Of a DNA stretch of 64,000 bases, positions 4,035-38,344 are shown piece by piece. Location of the stretch: the NCBI GenBank assembly GCA_964057225.1, contig OZ059895.1, positions 6,324,001 to 6,388,000 of the forward strand, given 5' to 3'. The first letter of the stretch is position 1, and each line of letters begins with the position of its first letter. The position numbers were made by a program, and so were the translations under genes. The notes below the pieces were generated by a model, which was not told the origin of the DNA, made no database searches, and saw only the letters and a list, made by a program, of their open reading frames with translations. Origin of the DNA: Auanema rhodensis. Its lineage: Eukaryota > Animalia > Nematoda.

Positions 4035-7000
4035 TTATTGTTGAACTCCTGCTTCCTCTATTAAATGTCCTGCATCTATAGAATCTTGCATTGATACAAC
4101 ACCTTGAATTTCAATTTCTTCCTGTAATGTGGTTTTGCTCATTTATACGATTTATTGAATATACCTCTCTTTTGCTAGAAGGTAAAAGCGCTCTAGATTT
4201 GTAATCTTGGGAGAAAACGGGATCCATGTTCTCACCAAGCAACTCGGAAACCTGAAAAAAAACTAAAAATATCGATGATATAAGTCATATTACCTCGTCA
4301 TAAGTCAAGTCATGTACCACCCCATTATCATCCAGCCCCGCAATAAGCAGAGGGTGATACGTATCCTGCTGAAAAAAAATCAAAATATTGTAATTGAAAA
4401 TGAAAAGCCACTAACATTATCTCGCAATGCCATTATTTTCTCTCTCTCCGTGTTAGACATAGCCAATGGCATATATATGAAACGCTTCCAGATTCCCAAA
4501 CCAGGAATGTACCTATAACACAAATGCAATGTAAGACAGAAACAATAATAATTTGAATACCTAAGCGAATTTTTATGGAAATGAGCTGTACATAAGTAAT
4601 GCCTACCACGAACCATTAGTCGATTTTGTAAACGGTCACGGTACTTAAAATAACGGAAACTTCCATTTTCATTTGCTTAAAACTTACGAAATGATCTCGA
4701 CAAATAGAATCAATCCAACATTTTCGTTTCTCAAAAGGCTCAGACGGAAAAGGAACCATATTAGCTCCAACATCCCGATGGTTACATTGGACACATTGAA
4801 CTTCGATTTGAGAAACCAGTCTTCTTTCAGCAATCACACTGTACGGATCCTAAGAAAGCTGATAAATACAATCAAATGAAATTTATTATTACCACTGCAG
4901 GTAAATGAGCTTTGCAAATTTTGCAAGGATGCATAGCTAATTGCTCGACACCTTTCTTCATCATCTGAAAGAAATATGATTGAATGAGAAAACAAACGAC
5001 ATTCAAACAGGTTTATCTCCGGATAACAGCTCTACTAAAAGTATTCTTTCTGCTTGTGTAGATGGTGGCCTAATTTCAACAAGGGAATCACTTGGTCCCC
5101 ACATATCACACAGAGGGCATTTAATTAAACCATGAGGTCCTCTGGGTGTGATATCATACTCGGACAAACCCTGAAGAATAGCCGACATAATTTTAAAAAA
5201 ACATGTTAACTTACTAAAGGTAAGGGTATAGACGCTTCATTGAATTCTACACAATCCTCTTTTTCCACAAAGGAATCTTGACAGAAATGATAAACACAAA
5301 GACGATATCTGGTTGATTTTGGTCGAGTTAATCTATCTTTGATCCATTTCCACCTTCTTTCCACTAACCGATTTATAGGAGGTCCACTCACAATATTGTG
5401 AAGCCAAAGCCTACTGCAACAAGATTATAATGATTTTGTTACATAAAACAAAAGATATATACCGTGTTAGTCGTTCGTTAGGAAAAGGCAGCAAGAGATT
5501 AGGATCTTTGAGATCTTCATCACACAAAACGCAATATGTTTTTAACCATTCATCCACTTTTTGATGTAATTGCTGAAGCAGGCAAGATATACTATTGAAA
5601 TAAAGAGAATGCAAAACTCACTCTATATGCCAAATGAGATTCACATATATTTATTGGGCAAAAATGGTAAGTTCCATTATTAATGAAATCATTTCTTCTT
5701 TTTAGCCATAAGACTCGCATAGATTCTTCAAAATCTCTGGGCCAATTCATAATTTCAAGCCATTTTTCATGTTTCACACTGGATAAAAAATTAGCTTACT
5801 CAAATCATAATTCAAACATACTCATCAAACGGCCACGTTCGAGGTTTATGTTCATCCATACTTTTCTGAGAAGATATAATTCGACTGCAAACTTGGCAAA
5901 ACCGAGCAGAGTTCATTTGTTCTCCGCTTAACTGTTCCAACTAAAACTCATTAATACCACTAATTATAGTGTAATATATATACCCGCTTAACAGCATCTA
6001 ATTCTTCGTCACTATCATCGGAACATTCTATGTTACCGTATATATCACTATTAGGTATATCGTTATCTTCGCTGAAATTATAATGTTATCAAATATAGAA
6101 AACAAGAATCATTACGCAAAGCCAAGTTCATCTTCTTGAGGATTAATGCTTTGAAGATGACGAGTATTATCAATAAATAATTGAGAAGTTGAAGGCCCTA
6201 CAAATGCAAACATAAAACAGATAAATTGTATTTTACACTACCTTCTAGTTCTCCTACTATTTGTTCATCTTCATATTGAATATTGGTATCATAACTATAT
6301 TCCGGACGATCATACATATACATTCGTCTACTATACGATCTACGCATTTTATCTGAGAGATACCTATATTGTAAACCATCAACACGATTCTAAATTAAAA
6401 TATAAATGAATGCCATAAATTTTAAAAACCTTTCCAAAACCATCTCTCCTGAGCAGCATTAACTCTTCTCGGCGGGCGCCTGGATCGATGTTTCTTGAAA
6501 GAATAGTATCCCCATGGTTAATCATATAGATTCGATTAGCTTGTTTATCTTCCTCACAAAGCTTGAACATTGAAAATAACAACACATATTCAAGAGAACA
6601 CTAACTGTTGGATCTGGAACAGCATCTTTTCTTAGTCTCCATTCTCCAAATTGGTTTATATCAAAATCATTATCACTAAAATGCCAATCACATAGAAATT
6701 TGGATGCTCCATTTTTTAATTTTTCTTGAAGCAATCTGAATTTAAATCATAAAATTGAATTATACATGGTAAATTGCTTACTCTCGTATAGCAGAATCAC
6801 CTTCCCCACAAATGGCGTTTACCCATTTATATCTAAAATGAAGTAATAATAATTATTCGATTTTTTAAACACTAACCTCCTACTTCTCGTTCTAGTGAAA
6901 GGAACCATGCACCTAAGGAAATTTTTTGCTTGACAATATACACACTTTAACTCAAGTGAATCAAAATCAAACATTTCATCGTCTTGAATAGAGTAACTCT

Positions 7001-7886
7001 GTAAAAATTGTTTAAATGTACTAATGATACTTGAAAACAAAAAACCTCTGGTTCTTGACGCATATCAATTGGCAAAAGTTGCCGGTTTTTTAAATTATGT
7101 GATCCTACTGGAAAGTGAATAGGACAAGCCTCTCCACAATGAGTAGCATCCGAAAAAGCTTCTCGTACCCATAGTTCTGCTGATCGTTCAGCATCCAAAT
7201 TAAACCTGAGAATCCATACTCGTCGTAACTCAAAAGACAAACTAATTTAAATAACAAAATTATAAAATACTCTGTGTTCACTTGGCAAACTTCTTAACTT
7301 TCCAAAAACCTTTTTTCGGCAAATTTGACAATACTTAGAACCATCATTTCGTTTACAATAATCTTGATTTTTGTAACGATCATAATGCCTTAATCAAGAA
7401 AGATTTAAAGATCATTATGCTTATTATTACCGTAAAGGAGCCCCACCGCTACCACCATTGTCTTTTCGTTTTGAACCTTTTTCTTTCCTATAATTCATTT
7501 AAGTTTTATATACATGGAACAAAATAGTAACCTTGGTAACATATCCATAGAATCATTGTTACTCATACCCTGAGCACTTGATTCTTCAACAAGCTGCAAA
7601 TATTCAAAAAGCAAATATTTAACAATTAATTTTGAATTACCTCAACATCCAATTCATTTTCAAGCATGCATTCTATTTTCTGCTCAGGTTGAAACAAGTT
7701 TTGATGGCTATAAATAAAAAAATAATTTTTTTTTGTTTATTTTTAACAATTCAACCTAGGGCCTTCAACATTCTGATATGGTTGGTCATCTAAAGCTTCT
7801 CTCTTTACAACAGGTTCTTCATCATCTATCAGTTCAGAAGTTTCTTGTGAAATACTGGCACGTCCCCGACGACGCGTAGGTGCCAT
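4035..7886 (-). CDS. him-17: Multi-THAP-domain chromatin protein, HIM-17-like
   Basis: Repeated C-x2-C...P...W...C-x2-HF modules (CQIC..LP..W..CPIHF; CVYC..PF..W..CDWHF; CESHL; CVLC..FP..W..CVYHF; CVQC..FP..W..CTAHF). It is adjacent to cni-1, as C. elegans him-17 is (recalled). Exon boundaries are approximate. Confidence 0.75.
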
Positions 7887-7889
7887 TTG

Positions 7890-8360
7890 GCCCAAAACTA
7901 AAACAAAACTATAAAAATGTATATTTGAGCTTGAAACTTATTATGCACCTGATTTGTTTCTTTCATTTTTTATACTATGTCTCAAGAGAGACAAGAGCTA
8001 TTATATATAATAAAGGAGAATTCAAACTTACCCTTTAAAAATTAAAGGACGACGGAAAGAAACCTTTAAACAAACGAGTTGCTCTATACGCACGTTGGTT
8101 GTAAACACAGTGCTGTTCAAAGTGTACATCGTTGGAAGTAATTTTCAAACTTCAAAATTTCAAAATTTCAAAATTTCAAAATATGAATAAAGTAAGTTAC
8201 GGTAATTTTTAAAAAAATTTAATTACCCGGGATTATTGATTTTTATCATATCCCTTGATGAACAAAATATTTCCAAATGAATTTTTGAGGTGCTAAGTCG
8301 ATATTTTTTCTATTTATTTCAGGTGATTAACCATAAAATCCTACTCCAAAACTCAAAAAA
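7890..8360. promoter_or_regulatory. Divergent (bidirectional) promoter region between him-17-like and ALC1 ATPase genes
   Basis: Head-to-head ATGs at 7886(-) and 8361(+); TTATTTCAG acceptor at ~8314-8322; short TTCAAAAT tandem at ~8144-8182. Confidence 0.6.
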
Positions 8361-10886
8361 ATGGTTTTACAAAAGAAATATAACCTTCATCCACTGGAAA
8401 ATGAATATAAAAAGAGAGGTATGCATAATGACTAAGGTTCAAAGTATATTATAAATACTTCTAAGGTATCACCTTGAGAGATTATCAAAAAGAGGGTGTT
8501 AAGAAAATGCTTGGATGGGTTGAAAATGGACACGGTGGAATTAATGCTGATGAAATGGGTCTGGGAAAAACATGCCAGGTTCATTAATCAACTCATTTTC
8601 ATTATGTAATAGTTTCATTCGGGTTTTAGACAGTGGTTACTCTAACAACACTATTTGCTCGTGGTGAAGGACCTTTCTGCGTACTTGCACCGCCTACTGT
8701 ATTGAGCCATTGGGTTAAAGAGATAGAATTGTACGAGTGGGAAATTACTAAACACAAACAATTTGTATTTCAGTTTTTCATGTGGAGTTCTTAATCCTAT
8801 ACAATTGCACACTAGACGTGACGAGTTTAGAGAGCAGCTCTCCAACTTACCTAAGATTACAAAGAATACGGTTGTCGTAGGGCCTTCGGCTGTAAGCAAA
8901 AAAAGAAGTTTTTTTTTTGTAAAAAAGTTTCTTAAGGTTAAAAAATTAATGGGACCACGTCACAAAGATATGCCTGTACAAATTCTTCGACAGTATTTTA
9001 AAGTTGAGATCCCTATCATAGTAGTGGACGAAGCACATTGCATCAAATCTTTCAGCTCAACATTCCGGGAGACACTTTATGTTGGTTCATAATTTCTCTG
9101 AATATATACACAAGTGATTTAGAAATATCCTGGTACATTTATTCTGTTAACAGGAACTCCTATCCAAAACTTTATATCTGAAACATTTTCCCTTTTACAG
9201 TTTGTAGATGTAAGTATGCTAATTGTTTCGCATGATTAGTGTAATTTTAGAAGAGAAAGTTCGATTCAATGAAAATAGATGATTTTGTTGAAGCGTACAG
9301 TTCTAAGGAAGGCTTAGCTAAACTGAAAAAGTTGCTTTCGAATTATATGTTCAGAAGATTGAAAGAAACAGTGTGTAGTCTTCCTGAAAGTTCAGAAGTC
9401 AGTTCAAAACATATTTCTAGTTGTCTAACTGATCTAGTTAGGTTATAATTTATCATGGATTCGCTGAAGTGCAGAAGAAATTATATGTAGAATTTATGAC
9501 AGGGGTATCAACTTGTGTGAAAATCAGTAATCCGTTTATGCAAATTAGGAAGATGGTATCTCATCCTTATATGTTTCGAGGTTTGCCAAAAAATGATAAT
9601 AATAAGAATTTATTAGCTTTGTAGGTGTTGAACCTGAGCCTTTTGTCGAAGGTGAACATTTAGTGACATCTTGTGGTAAACTGTCGGTGAGACTTAATAA
9701 TTTGTGTCCAGTCTAACTGGTTATTTTAAGTTATTGAGTGATCTCTGTTATTATCTTAAACCTCGCGGTCATAAGGTTTTAATTTTTTGTGCATTTCTTA
9801 ATGTATTAGATATTATCGAGGACTTTATGGCTCTGAGAGGTGAGTAAACTTCTTTATCCGTATCACACTTTAAATTGTTTTTAATTACAGGGTACTCTTG
9901 TATGAGATTGGATGGCAGCTGTCCATTAGAGAAGAGAAGTGAAATTATTGATAAATATCGTAATATTTTCGTTTTTGTTTCTCTATTTTTGTTATTTATA
10001 GAGAAAGGTGATACTTTCGCTCTGGTAATGACTACCGAAACAGGAGGTTTTGGAATCACTCTCACCGCTGCGGATACCGTAATCTTCTATGATACTCATT
10101 TCAATCCTCATGTAGATATCCAAGCCAAGGCTCGTACTCATAGAATAGGACAAAATAAGTAAGCATACTTACTACTTATTTGTTGATATTAAAATTTTAT
10201 AGAATTGTACGAGTTATTCGATTACTAGGATCCGGAACAGCTGAGGAGTACTTTTACAGCATTGCTCACTCTAAGATAGGACTTCACGAAGGATTAACCG
10301 GAGAGAATAGTTTGATGTTCAATTTTTTTTGTAGATATTTTTTATATTTAAGTTGAAGCCGACTGCGGATTTGACTGCAAGGCAGTTGACAGTTTCTGTA
10401 ATGATATGGTCCTCAGCGGCAACGTTTTAAATACGAGTGTTAAAAAAATGGTTTGATGCGTACAACTTCTGTCATTGTTTACCATTATGCATATTTTTTA
10501 TAGACTGAAGAGGAGCTTGATAAAATTCTTGGGGCTTCAGATGAAAATGGATGGCTACCTTATGTACATGATACTGTAAGATTCGTTAAACTTGATATAC
10601 TTATATTAAAGTTTTAGAAATATAAAGCTCAGCTTGAAAACCATATTAAGAATCAGTTTACCGATTATTATGTATATCAAGTAATTTGTAATTTTCTTTT
10701 CTTTTTCAATGTTCTGCTGCTCAGGGAACTTACTATCGTAAAATGCGTGAAGAAGGTTTGAAGGAAAAAGAAAAGAAGGAATGGACTCGAAATGCCCGCT
10801 GCAGAGAACGTGATCCTGAAGCATGTTTAAGTGAAAATTTCCTGGCTGATCTCGCTTTAAAACGAAGTGAAGGTTTTACTGACTAA
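8361..10886 (+). CDS. CHD1L: Snf2-family ATPase of the ALC1/CHD1L subfamily (ATPase half only, ends in the linker)
   Basis: GGINADEMGLGKTCQ, VVDEAH, LLTGTPIQN, the ALC1-typical [48 protein letters not shown].HRIGQ and LDKILG. The last exon 10725-10886 ends in TAA; AATAAA at 10996. Confidence 0.88.
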
Positions 10887-11129
10887 AAAAAGAATTACCT
10901 ACTAACTACCTGTACTATTACTACTTATTAACAACAAAAACTGAAGCTTTTTTGTATTGCAATGCATGTTTAACTCTTTGAAGTGCTTTTTTTTGAATAA
11001 ATTGCTCGAAATTTTAATTTTTTTAAATTTTTACATATAGACATGTTTTATTATTCATACTTTTAATGATATGAGTATGTAGTTATTATTATTTTTGAAG
11101 TATTTCAAGATTTCAATTTTTAAAGTATA

Positions 11130-12628
11130 ATGATGGAAGAAAGTGAACAGGTTTTTAATTCTGGTTGATATTGTTATTTACTCCTCATATCTAGAATTTC
11201 GTGTTGAAACATGTAGAAGGGGATATTCTCAATCCTACTCGCAGTGCTGAAGTTATTAACATCCTATTGCACTGTGTAGACGACAGTGGTTTGTGTCTCT
11301 ACAGTGTAAAAAAAATGATTTTTTTTTAAACTAGGTGTCTATGGTTCTGGTGGATTGTTTGATTTGATGAAAAGAAAATATCCGTCTATTCTCGATGCAT
11401 ATGAGAATATTCCGGATTTAAGCAAAGGACAAGCTCATATTGTCATCAATGATGTTTTGAACGGAACTGGCAGTGTTGTCATTTTTTTGATAGCTCAAGA
11501 TCAAAATGATAGAAGTCTGTGAGAGTCTGAGTTCAAAGAAATTGCGTTTTCAGGCCATATAGAACAAGATGTTTTTGAATCTTCAATGAAGAATGCTTCT
11601 GAGTTGGTTAAAACGTTTCCTAATGCATCTGTTAATCTGCCAAAAATTGGTTATGGGACTGATTTGAATTGGAATACAGTATAGTAGTTCATTGATTGCA
11701 TATATCCACAGATTCACTTAAGGTTGAACAAATGATTGAGAGATATTTCTTGAGATACCGAATCTCTTGCACTGTTTTTCATTATAAACGACCTGCAAGG
11801 CCAACAACTACTGCTCGGCGTCCAGCTCTTCGCTTAGTTGATGGTAATGGAGATAGAGATCGTTCAGAATCGCCTTTACCAGGTAGATTATTGACTATAT
11901 GTACTGCTTACATAAAATTACAGCTAAACGAGCTCGGAAACCAATTGTTGATTTGACAAGGTTAGATAACGACGACCGAAGTTCTTCATCATCTTCAAGT
12001 GCTGAGAGTAGTGAAGGTGAATACGAACCAAGTGATATTGAAGGTTAGTTATAACTAATTGGAGCATTTATAACTGGCAGTTTAGATAAACAAGATCCGT
12101 CTAGCTCTGATTCAAGTTTGGAATCAGACGACGAGGAGGAAGAAATAGAAACCGAAGATGATGTAGAGAGTGAAGATGAATACGTGGATGATAGATACAA
12201 GAAACCACCGTCGAGAAAACCTTTTCCTATACCTGAAGTGAAACCAAAATCTGAGGATTCTTTCAACGGAGCAGTTGTTTCACTTTTCGACGTGCCCGAA
12301 GATCTACTTAACGAATATATGTATATACTGTTTTATGTTCTTTATCATTATTTCTTATTTTAGGTCGTTTATCCAACAACAAGGTGGAGAAGTTGTAACC
12401 AATGAAGATGATTTGAAAAAAGCTACAGTGTCTGTTGTTTATAATCTTGAATTATTGCAAAACGCGGAAAAATTAGATGAATTCAGGTAGAATCAAAGAT
12501 ATTTCTAAATCATTAAAATCACTTTTAGACTAAAATTTGATAATGATTGCTTACAAGTTACATCCAATTATCTTGACGATCTGATTGCTGATGTTTCTGA
12601 TGTTAATATCCATTCTTACGTGCTTTGA
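11130..12628 (+). CDS. ALC1-type macrodomain + acidic linker + C-terminal BRCT-like domain protein
   Basis: ATG ATG GAA at 11130 after a TTTTTAAAG acceptor. LKHVEGDILNP..LLHCVDDSGVYGSGGLF..FLIAQ..VNLPKIG..NW..E..I.RY matches the ALC1 macrodomain. A D/E/S-rich tract follows, then FNGAVVSL..FIQQQGGEVV..KATVSV (BRCT-like); TGA at 12626. Confidence 0.85.
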
Positions 12629-12725
12629 AATAAAAAAAAACTATTTATTATGGAGTATTATCACCAGGCATTTCAAAAATTGAGTGAACATACATCAAGA
12701 GATCTCTATACAAAGCTGTATCATA

Positions 12726-35686: not shown

Positions 35687-35758
35687 TCCTCGGTAGTATA
35701 GTGGTGAGTATCCGCGTCTGTCACATGCGAGACCCGGGTTCAATTCCCGGCCGGGGAG
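35687..35758 (+). tRNA. tRNA-Asp(GTC)
   Basis: TCCTCGGTAGTATAGTGGTGAGTATCCGCGTCTGTCACATGCGAGACCCGGGTTCAATTCCCGGCCGGGGAG: 72 nt, A and B boxes, GTC anticodon, followed by a T-run terminator. Confidence 0.97.
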
Positions 35759-36115: not shown

Positions 36116-38344
36116 CTCTTTAACTTTTGTCTTTCTTTATGATCTGTTTATAACAACCTATGGGATTCGATTTTGAACTGGTTGAGTTCCGCCATCTTAT
36201 CCTTTCGGCTATTAAGCACATTCACATATATATGATTGGTAATTATATGATAAAATAAAAAGTGTAGATAGCATATAAACCATGGTGGGTTATGTTTAAG
36301 GCGTAATAACCCGTTGATATGATGATATTTTCAAATTTTATAAGTTTTTCTGATTCTATATGATAAGATTTCATATATTTAAGTTCCTCAGTACTTAAAT
36401 TTTTATTGTTAATTAAACTTTTTAATAAAATAATACCAGAAACCAATAGTCTTTGAAGGCCCACTCCACTGATGCGGTACCAGGATTTCAATTTGACACT
36501 TGAACTCTACTCTAACCGATTAGCAGCATTTCACGTGTACTCTATACGAGTAAATTTGTCATTTTTCTAACATAAATGAACGGTTGCGGTTGCTTTTCTT
36601 CAATTTCAATAACATTTTTCATAGTTTTGTCTGTTAAACAAGTGTTTTTAAGCTCAGACCACATCGTGGGAGTCCAGTCATCGGATTCTCCAGCTCTCCT
36701 TTTTGGGGTCCTGATTGATTTCGTGTTCTTACACAGAGGTTACAGGTACGCCTTGGCTTTGGATGGCTTCATGTAGGCTGGACCAGAGTCTACATATACA
36801 ACTTTTATTTTTTTTGGGCTTCAGGAGCAGAAACACCTCTTTCAAAATTAGAAAAAATTACGTGGCACATATAAAAGTAGGCTTAAAAGTTTTTCAAAAA
36901 GTTTTTTCGGGGGTAATAAATTAATACTAAAAACTTTTTTTTCTTTTATTATGTTTAAATATATTCTAATTTTATAATTAATTTAAAACATTTAAAAATA
37001 TTCGTTAGATTAACATATTTTTTTCAAATTTTTATTATCAGCCACGTAATTATTGACACATCTTATTTTTGTTAAAGATCTATTGCACAACACCCAGTTC
37101 ATGTACGGTGAAATGAATAGTGTGCACCCTGTTTGCCATGTCATATTTGGTTTAAACCCAGTACTCAAAGGTATGTAGGGGATTTCAAACATGTAAATGT
37201 TTAAAATAAACTAAATATTTGGAATGTTCGGTTGGGGTTATCCAACTGGACGAAATTGATTAAGACAAGATGTTGTTTGAGTTATAACTTTCAAAATCAT
37301 TTTAACTATTAATGCTTTTCTTCTGTACTCTCTGTTTTAACAATTAATTTCAATTCAAAAACAAGAAAAAAGAATAATTTTTATTTATAAAACCACGATA
37401 TAAAACTCTTTGATATCTTAATACTGGCGACTTTTTCGAAATCTCCAAGGAGTAGGAAGACGCCGGTAATTTGGGATTACTTTCAGGGACTATAGCATTT
37501 GTTGTTCTCAAGTTGTCCATAAATGGAAAAAAAACAGAAACAAACAAACAAAGAAAATATGAAATATCGATTTTTTGGGGAGGGGTGATTCGAGAGGAAA
37601 TAGTTTCGAAGACCTAGTAATAACCATTTTGGTTGAGCAGTTAGAAACAATTATCCTAATAATAATAATAAAAATAAAAAAATTATACAAAGTAGCGGAG
37701 AAGAAGAATAGTATAATCAAAAAAAATATAATATAATATCCGTATACCAGAGGAACAGTTCAATAGCAAAGAAGCATAATGTTCAATTTTTGCCTTAAGC
37801 GGTTGAGGGAGTGAAGGGAGAGAGAGAGAGAGAGAAGCAGAGAATAGAATGAGGAAGCGAAATCTTTTGTTTTTTCAAATTAAAAACAAATATGATTGTT
37901 AATAGAGCAATCCACAACCTAATCAGAGTGTCTAAAGTCATTGAAGATAACTACTTTCCTGTAAAATGAAGAAAATATAATGAATAAGAGATATTCTTAT
38001 TTGAAATAAGAATAAAACTCATCAAATTAGACTTCATTATAGAAAATGGAATAAAGAAATGAATGCGCAGACTACTAATATATAATTAATTTGAAATTGT
38101 TGTTGAGTTTATATATATATATATAGTCGATATAAACAAAAAAATTAATTGTTTTCTACTGGATTAAATTAGTAACGAAAATTCAAAATTATATTTACAA
38201 TGTGTAAAAGTTCGGATGTAGTAGTAATCGTCCAATAAACCCGTATCTGGAAGAAGCGCCAAATGGATTTTGAGAGAACACGTTACGGAAAAAACTAACA
38301 ACAATTTTTGTTAAGTAAGAGAAATATTTAACGAGGCACTGGGT

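Follow-up and report, generated by a model that had tools for sequence, protein, structure and literature searches.

An ALC1-type Snf2 motor and an apparently separate macrodomain gene lacking the human autoinhibitory arginines in a nematode locus

Introduction

A locus in the genome of the nematode Auanema rhodensis raises the question of what becomes of ALC1 autoinhibition when the Snf2 motor and the macrodomain that controls it appear to be encoded apart. ALC1 is a drug target, and to our knowledge the human protein is the only one in which control by the macrodomain has been elucidated. Deletion of the human macrodomain raises ATPase activity 20- to 120-fold (Wang et al. 2021). In the 3.5 Å crystal structure, R857 and R860 of the macrodomain form bonds to E332, D377 and D381, the residues of ATPase lobe 2 that make up the H4-binding pocket and also contact the H4 tail. 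Y853 packs against F336 and V338, R398 and R402 of motif IV are held by W852 together with the P-loop, and Y874 touches S396; E337 is not among the reported contacts (Wang et al. 2021). The ATPase and macro halves of the human protein form a stable, PAR-sensitive complex in trans (Lehmann et al. 2017). The published alignment that describes these arginines as "highly conserved" covers human, chimp, mouse and cow only.

An original prediction, made from the DNA letters of this locus, held that the macrodomain has kept its PAR-binding motifs and lost the autoinhibitory basic patch, that the interface decayed after fission, and that this loss independently supports a split of the ancestral gene and predicts a de-repressed motor. 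Here we examine the gene models, the identity of the two halves and both sides of the interface, and weigh what they suggest about regulation.

Results

Gene models of the locus

We analysed a window of 64,000 nt (contig OZ059895.1), which is AT-rich eukaryotic DNA with very short GT-AG introns; all positions below refer to it. Two spliced plus-strand models were built from the raw sequence, and the genes described here are predictions from these models. The models comprise the following features:

8361-10886, + strand: gene 1, a predicted ALC1/CHD1L-type Snf2 ATPase, 17 exons, 601 aa, with a single terminal stop
8558-72, + strand: ATPase motif GLGKT, intact
9027-38, + strand: ATPase motif DEAH, intact
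9123-9209, + strand: ATPase exon (part of the motif III region), in the final spliced model
9144-70, + strand: ATPase motif LLTGTPIQN, intact
10139-53, + strand: ATPase motif HRIGQ, intact
10618-10680, + strand: ATPase exon, in the final spliced model
10887-11129, + strand: gap between the two reading frames, 243 nt
11130-12628, + strand: gene 2, macro protein, 9 exons, 385 aa, ATG at 11130
11882-11958, + strand: basic stretch after the macrodomain, PAKRARKPIVDLTRL, spliced across 11882|11924, as translated from the model
12263-12628, + strand: C-terminal region, BRCT-like by eye, FNGAVVSLF...FIQQQGGEVV...ATVSVVY...CLQVTSNYLDDLI

The introns, GT-AG in both spliced models, measure 41-53 nt in gene 1 and 39-46 nt in gene 2, such that all 24 across the two genes fall within 39-53 nt. 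The reading frame of gene 1 closes with TAA at 10884-10886; the stop of gene 2 ends at 12628 and is followed directly by AATAAA at 12629. Gene 2 opens with a 7-residue mini-exon (MMEESEQ), continues with a four-exon ALC1-type macrodomain and the basic stretch, and ends with an acidic tract, a long Ser/Asp/Glu run that brings the net charge of the tail to -32, and the BRCT-like region. For this last region, exon-level Pfam and PDB searches gave no BRCT match, and the pattern is one seen by eye only. The basic stretch is NLS-like, and its AKRARK sequence presumably resembles the basic patch of the histone H4 tail.

ALC1-type identity of the two halves

Homology searches were run exon by exon, each exon alone, against the 177,635 sequences of the PDB. 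Macro exon 1 (query 11195-11287) matched three human CHD1L sequences and nothing else, over residues 717-743, with 14 of 27 positions identical (E ~0.085). On the other side of the gap, the lobe-2 exon VEPEPFVEGEHLVTSCGKL likewise returned only the three human CHD1L sequences, at residues 331-349, with 12 of 19 positions identical. The E-values of these two CHD1L-specific matches are weak (0.08-0.4) because the queries are only 20-31 aa long. Two further ATPase exons gave broader results: residues 2-35 of the exon at 9731-9839 matched CHD1L 352-385 ungapped, among generic Snf2 matches, and the motif V-VI exon matched CHD1L at 4.7e-13 (51.4 bits), tied with INO80. Because two independent exons, one on each side of the gap, single out CHD1L, we take both halves to be ALC1-type.

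The other queries were less informative. PDB searches with macro exons 2, 3 and 4, a piece of exon 3, the linker exon and the BRCT-like exon produced chance matches only, and in Pfam no single exon, used as a query, reached any family, including the cut-off of the Macro domain (PF01661). An exhaustive protein search with macro exon 2 (59 aa) yielded six repeat proteins with no relation to the query, among them RCC1 and DUF4379, and a metagenome scan with the same exon found no relative. Close relatives are thus missing from the searched protein library, and distant ones are beyond the reach of a 59-aa query. Macro exon 2 is present in a single copy in the genome (181 Mb, 112 contigs); there is therefore no second, fused copy elsewhere in it.

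Fused or split gene structure

The ALC1 linker continues into the last ATPase exon, which stays open for 54 codons up to the TAA at 10884-6, against a stop frequency of 0.065 per codon. YVYQ|GTYY spans the junction into this exon; its human counterpart would be YLFEGKDY. About 20 aa further on, the ATPase tail reads TRNARCRER, a stretch that we looked at for the R611 arginine anchor of the regulatory linker. The GT donors inside the exon are all in phase 1, and no phase-1 acceptor enters the macro frame.

In three-frame translation, the gap at 10887-11129 carries stops in all frames, and at 243 nt it lies far outside the intron range of the locus. A scan for poly(A) signals found AATAAA at 10996-11001. 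Before gene 2 there is an in-frame TAA 9 nt upstream of the ATG at 11130, and a sequence resembling a 3' splice site, TTTTTAAAG, ends at 11125, which leaves 4 nt to that ATG. The distance from the poly(A) signal to this acceptor is about 125 nt, a spacing that is classic for SL2-type operons in C. elegans. The genome also contains arrays of SL1-like genes and SL2 RNA genes; four SL2 matches exceed the Rfam cut-off, and one of these lies in the window at 37149-37255. Taken together, the models favour a motor and a macrodomain encoded by two genes over one polypeptide, at a locus with what reads as nematode SL2-type operon spacing.

The exon models can be set against sampled 31-letter words of 8300-12700, of which a share of 0.53-0.55 was present in each of four runs of one study. 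If the contigs of these runs are spliced RNA that includes every modelled exon of the two genes, a share of 0.50-0.54 is expected; a single gene would give 0.33 or 0.21, and DNA about 1. These shares support the exon models and the expression of both genes and are equally compatible with split or fused products; it is the gene models that point to the two-gene structure.

Helix alpha-4 and the autoinhibitory arginines

The macrodomain features on which the comparison with human ALC1 depends are these:

11195-11288, + strand: macro exon 1, NFVLKHVEGDILNPTRSAEVINILLHCVDDS, corresponding to human 717-743
11335-11514, + strand: macro exon 2, containing GSGGLF at 11343-60, which corresponds to human G747-R-G-G750-L-F
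11554-11678, + strand: macro exon 3, helix alpha-3 region and second phosphate loop, ending ...ASVNLPKIGYGTDLNW-NT
11723-11746, + strand: helix alpha-4, VEQMIERY, in macro exon 4, used for the register test

The original prediction named GDILNP, GSGGLF, VEQMIERY and EPEPFV, and a motif search found all four on the plus strand, the three macrodomain motifs at 11219-11236, 11343-11360 and 11723-11746, respectively. Within the interval 11630-11790, to which the prediction was assigned, lies the helix VEQMIERY, but GDILNP, GSGGLF and EPEPFV fall outside it. That interval consists of the end of macro exon 3 (ASVNLPKIGYGTDLNWNT, to 11678), an intron and the start of exon 4 (VEQMIERYFLRYRISCTVFHY...), such that LNW and the two residues NT at 11664-78 are followed by the intron and then by VEQMIERY. 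The intron, 11679-11722, is 44 nt long and GT-AG; in the model, GT at 11679 with AG at 11721-22 is the sole junction found there that keeps the frame open. A stronger-looking acceptor at 11711 was rejected, as it leads to a stop after 7 codons.

The alignment by eye that put Q at R857 and E at R860 was checked against human residues 852-863, WYGTERLIRKHL (W-Y-G-T-E-R-L-I-R-K-H-L), which we derived from mutagenesis primers listed in Table S2 of Lehmann et al. (2017). The forward primer for R857E gives G-T-E-[857]-L-I-R-K and that for R860W gives R-L-I-[860]-K-H-L, while the reverse primer for R860W gives ..N-W-Y-G-T-E; the resulting segment agrees with the numbering of W852, Y853, R857 and R860 in Wang et al. 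(2021). When this 12-mer was slid along both spliced models, the best placement was WNTVEQMIERYF, ungapped, with a BLOSUM62 score of 23. The next-best offset scores 11 (z=5.0 over 964 offsets), and shifts of 1-4 positions in either direction all score at most 1. The register thus bears out the alignment by eye: Q, at 11729-31, occupies the position of human R857, and E, at 11738-40, that of R860. Within the helix, E856 and I859 are identical, and positions 858, 859 and 863, which are L, I and L in human, read M, I and F, so the amphipathic pattern is also kept. R stands at the position of human K861, and more arginines follow further along the helix.

Of the residues W852, Y853, R857 and R860, only W852 is kept (W at 11670-72, in macro exon 3); Y853 is replaced by N (11673-75), R857 by Q and R860 by E. 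The human Y874 position may be H here. Macro-side contacts are thus retained at one of five positions. The verified identity to human is 52% over macro exon 1 and 25% over alpha-4, and because the domain is only 25-52% identical to human in these verified stretches, one kept contact of five is within expectation and, as far as the aligned residues tell, is not statistically below background divergence. The further claim that the loss of the arginines independently supports the split does not survive this comparison. What was said of the human protein is in line with the published record: with R857Q, R857E or R860W, macrodomain and ATPase no longer co-precipitate, and ATPase and remodeling activity rise without PARP1.

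PAR-binding residues

The claim that the PAR-binding motifs are retained holds for both residues compared. D723, the D of GDILNP in the alignment of macro exon 1 to CHD1L, is kept, as is G750, with R748 replaced by S (GSGGLF here, GRGGLF in human according to the G750E primer). In human ALC1, the mutations D723A and G750E each abolish PAR binding. From the kept D723, G750 and GxGGLF loop, the macro protein is predicted still to read PAR. This reading needs a caveat, however: in human ALC1, R857 adjoins the site of PAR binding, and its change to E reduces both this binding and early recruitment, so the nematode protein may bind PAR with another affinity. Over its 165 aa the macrodomain has a net charge of -2 and is thus not basic. 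Elsewhere in the genome there are at least three PARP catalytic loci.

Partner surface on ATPase lobe 2

On the motor side, three exons of lobe 2 bear on the interface:

9625-9686, + strand: lobe-2 exon GVEPEPFVEGEHLVTSCGKLS, corresponding to human 331-349, containing EPEPFV at 9630-9647
9731-9839, + strand: lobe-2 exon with LDIIEDF (9806-26), ungapped against CHD1L 352-385
9891-9959, + strand: motif IV exon YSCMRLDGSCPLEKRSEIIDKY, to which the offset was carried on, anchored on the conserved R-x-D-G

The human numbering of lobe 2 was cross-checked with the E332A, E334A, E337A and D329A primers. In the exon at 9625-9686, E332, E334 and F336 are kept, whereas E337 is replaced by V, V338 by E, D340 by E and E344 by T; the D329 position, just before this exon, is R. 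In the next exon, with residues mapped by offset, D377 and D381 are kept, D353 is replaced by S (with a D at 354) and D384 by A. In the motif IV exon, S396 and R402 are probably kept and R398 probably replaced by P, positions assigned by offset only.

The original prediction had read EPEPFV as a decayed form of the human partner patch. The motif is there, but E337 is not a reported crystal contact, the adjacent change of V338 to E places an acid next to it, and the real contacts, E332, D377 and D381, are all kept. All three residues of the H4-binding pocket are thus present, which would be expected from the second job of this pocket, the binding of the H4 tail. In contrast, half of the peripheral acidic residues that Lehmann et al. 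mutated as an "acidic patch" are gone here. An intact dual-use pocket with a changed periphery is suggestive.

Discussion

Regulation of the motor

Our reading of this locus is as follows. An ALC1/CHD1L-type Snf2 motor is followed, 243 nt downstream on the same strand, by a separate frame opening with an ALC1-type macrodomain. This macrodomain keeps its PAR-reading residues (D723, G750 and the GxGGLF loop) and the buried W852. Its alpha-4, which in human ALC1 plugs the lobe-2 acidic pocket, is changed at each polar or aromatic contact: Y853 to N, R857 to Q, a substitution also known from cancer, and R860 to E, a charge reversal. The motor keeps what ATP hydrolysis and H4 tail binding require. 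Since alpha-4 no longer carries the residues that plug the H4 pocket in human ALC1, we lean, on balance, towards the view that the human-type clamp of macrodomain on lobe 2 does not form here; control of the motor would then lie with recruitment or with other partners instead of autoinhibition in cis. The loss of the arginines suggests that self-inhibition of the human kind no longer applies to this motor, and we infer that macro-motor binding is lost with them. A more far-reaching reading, which we offer tentatively and as something short of probable, is that of a naturally split ALC1, with PAR reader and Snf2 motor co-expressed from one SL2-type operon, the clamp dissolved and switching achieved by recruitment. 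In a bolder version, control would have moved to the AKRARK stretch, acting in trans on the acidic pocket in an ISWI AutoN-like manner.

Three other explanations have to be weighed against this one. Ordinary lineage divergence is a serious contender, though we consider it rather unlikely: the R857/R860 clamp could be a refinement of vertebrates or of a narrower group that nematode ALC1 never had, and the substitutions would therefore say nothing on split or decay. The "highly conserved" alignment indeed consists of four mammals, alpha-4 is 25% identical overall, and the one kept contact of five lies within background. Against this, both arginine changes remove charge, one of them being the de-repressing cancer allele and the other a reversal; Y853 is lost; and on the partner lobe five acidic-patch positions and R398 have changed while the dual-use pocket stayed, an asymmetry of changed periphery and kept pocket that would be expected from relaxed selection on the interface alone. 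Less plausible to us, and unlikely on the whole, is that inhibition is kept in trans by other contacts, either the clamp of W852 and the P-loop on motif IV or docking of the H4-like AKRARK stretch in the E332/D377/D381 pocket. The retention of W852, S396, R402 and the acidic pocket speaks for it, as does the stable, PAR-sensitive trans complex of the human halves, and W852C alone de-represses human ALC1 7- to 35-fold (Wang et al. 2021), which argues that the W852 clamp matters. However, motif IV carries R398 to P, the H4-like stretch could equally well be a plain nuclear localisation signal, and the lack of a tether lowers the effective concentration.

The explanation that we find most improbable is that the locus is still one gene, its stop and ATG belonging to an alternative terminal exon or arising from an assembly error, with a fused ALC1 with a short linker as the main product. 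Phase would allow it: phase 0 is shared by the acceptor at 11195 and by the donors that follow 10450, 10575 and 10680, and skipping the last ATPase exon and the mini-exon stays in frame. Yet the fusion intron would be at least 514 nt long where 24 of 24 introns are 39-53 nt, the exon to be skipped is the open frame that continues the ALC1 linker and precedes AATAAA, the mini-exon opens with an ATG that has a stop shortly before it, and the fused product would be without nearly all of the linker. The sequence observation is thus well anchored, and the functional reading built on it is a reasonable hypothesis. The proposed order of events, fission first and decay of the interface after it, is a conjecture that the sequence of this one locus does not polarise.

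If true, this locus would be a natural experiment in which the protein has been cut at the linker and exactly the residues hit in cancer have been replaced. It would ask whether the PAR recruitment and the motor inhibition exerted by the macrodomain can be separated, and it would illustrate how nematode operons can let one gene become two.

Comparison with known systems

Compared with human ALC1/CHD1L (PDB 7EPU, autoinhibited; 7ENN and 7OTQ, nucleosome), the nematode proteins share the Snf2 motor motifs, the VEPEPF segment of lobe 2, the E332/D377/D381 pocket, and D723, G750 and W852 of the macrodomain. They differ in that the human protein is fused, whereas here the motor and the macrodomain are, from the gene models, apparently separate proteins. 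In place of Y853, R857 and R860, the nematode protein has N, Q and E; D329, E337, E344, D353, D384 and R398 have changed; most of the lysine/arginine-rich linker is absent; and the macro protein has an acidic tract and a BRCT-like tail, both of which human ALC1 is without.

The arrangement on the chromosome resembles the SL2-type operons of Caenorhabditis elegans and its relatives, in which genes lie on the same strand and some 105-125 nt separate the poly(A) signal, or the cleavage site, from the 3' splice site just before the next ATG. Partners in such operons are usually unrelated genes, whereas here they would be two halves of one ancestral protein. In ISWI, AutoN, a basic mimic of the H4 tail, blocks the acidic pocket of lobe 2 by the same logic as the arginines of macro alpha-4. 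The AKRARK stretch is similarly a look-alike of the H4 patch, but may here be just a nuclear localisation signal.

Among the cancer alleles R857Q, R860W and W852C, the first is identical to the residue found here, and position 860 also loses its positive charge. Those alleles, however, are single somatic changes in a fused protein, whereas the nematode gene is a germline gene in which several interface positions differ and W852 is kept. A counterpart in architecture is the engineered split ALC1 (ALC1cat 16-612 and ALC1macro 613-879; Lehmann et al. 2017), which likewise consists of two polypeptides cut in the linker. The engineered human halves still have R857 and R860 and associate stably in trans, in a complex that lasts until the addition of PARylated PARP1, whereas in the nematode macro protein the residues whose mutation abolishes that binding are already replaced.

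Macrodomain gene and its genomic neighborhood

The macro gene, the second of the two genes into which the ALC1-type ATPase and macrodomain are modelled as split, continues beyond the macrodomain with basic and acidic segments, listed here with the neighboring features of the window.

Features in the window

6800-7900, minus strand: exons belonging to an unrelated gene that faces the ATPase gene head-to-head
11882 and 11924-11958, plus strand: basic stretch PAKRARKPIVDL, directly after the macrodomain
11960-12260, plus strand: long acidic Ser/Asp/Glu tract
35687-35758, plus strand: tRNA gene (Rfam tRNA, 55.4 bits)
37149-37255, plus strand: gene for an SL2 spliced-leader RNA (46.7 bits to Rfam RF00199, cut-off 41)

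In human ALC1, the macrodomain arginines R857 and R860 bind the same lobe-2 pocket in which the H4 tail basic patch (AKRHRKVLRD) docks, and PAKRARKPIVDL appears to resemble that patch; the stretch could equally well be a plain nuclear localisation signal. The acidic tract is rich in S-x-x-E/D sites of the casein-kinase-2 type, and in combining a PAR reader, an acidic tract and a BRCT-like end the protein may parallel repair scaffolds, of which XRCC1 and APLF are examples. PARP catalytic-domain exons occur at at least three loci of the genome (G000), at C6:15746653-15747411, C7:13066814-13067573 and C4:13762442-13762618, and a PAR-writing system is therefore present in this nematode.

All introns modelled across window 8361-12628 (+), 24 of 24, fall within 39-53 nt, a very tight distribution that aids gene modelling in this genome. 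An open frame of the minus-strand exons terminates near 7895.

Three further SL2 RNA copies, on contigs C5 and C1, all score above the window copy. More than 50 SL1-like genes, scoring 54-62 bits and thus below the Rfam cut-off of 75, form tandem arrays 0.35-0.7 Mb past the downstream end of the window (G000:C3:6741531-7099372), with members often spaced 252 or 504 nt apart.

Position of the proposed split

The human ALC1 linker carries an Arg anchor, R611, which binds the nucleosome acidic patch. The tail of the ATPase gene (window 10725-10886, +) contains TRNARCRER, a possible counterpart of this anchor. If this correspondence is true, the split would fall directly after that segment, and the nematode division would lie close to the 612/613 cut that separates the engineered human ALC1 halves.
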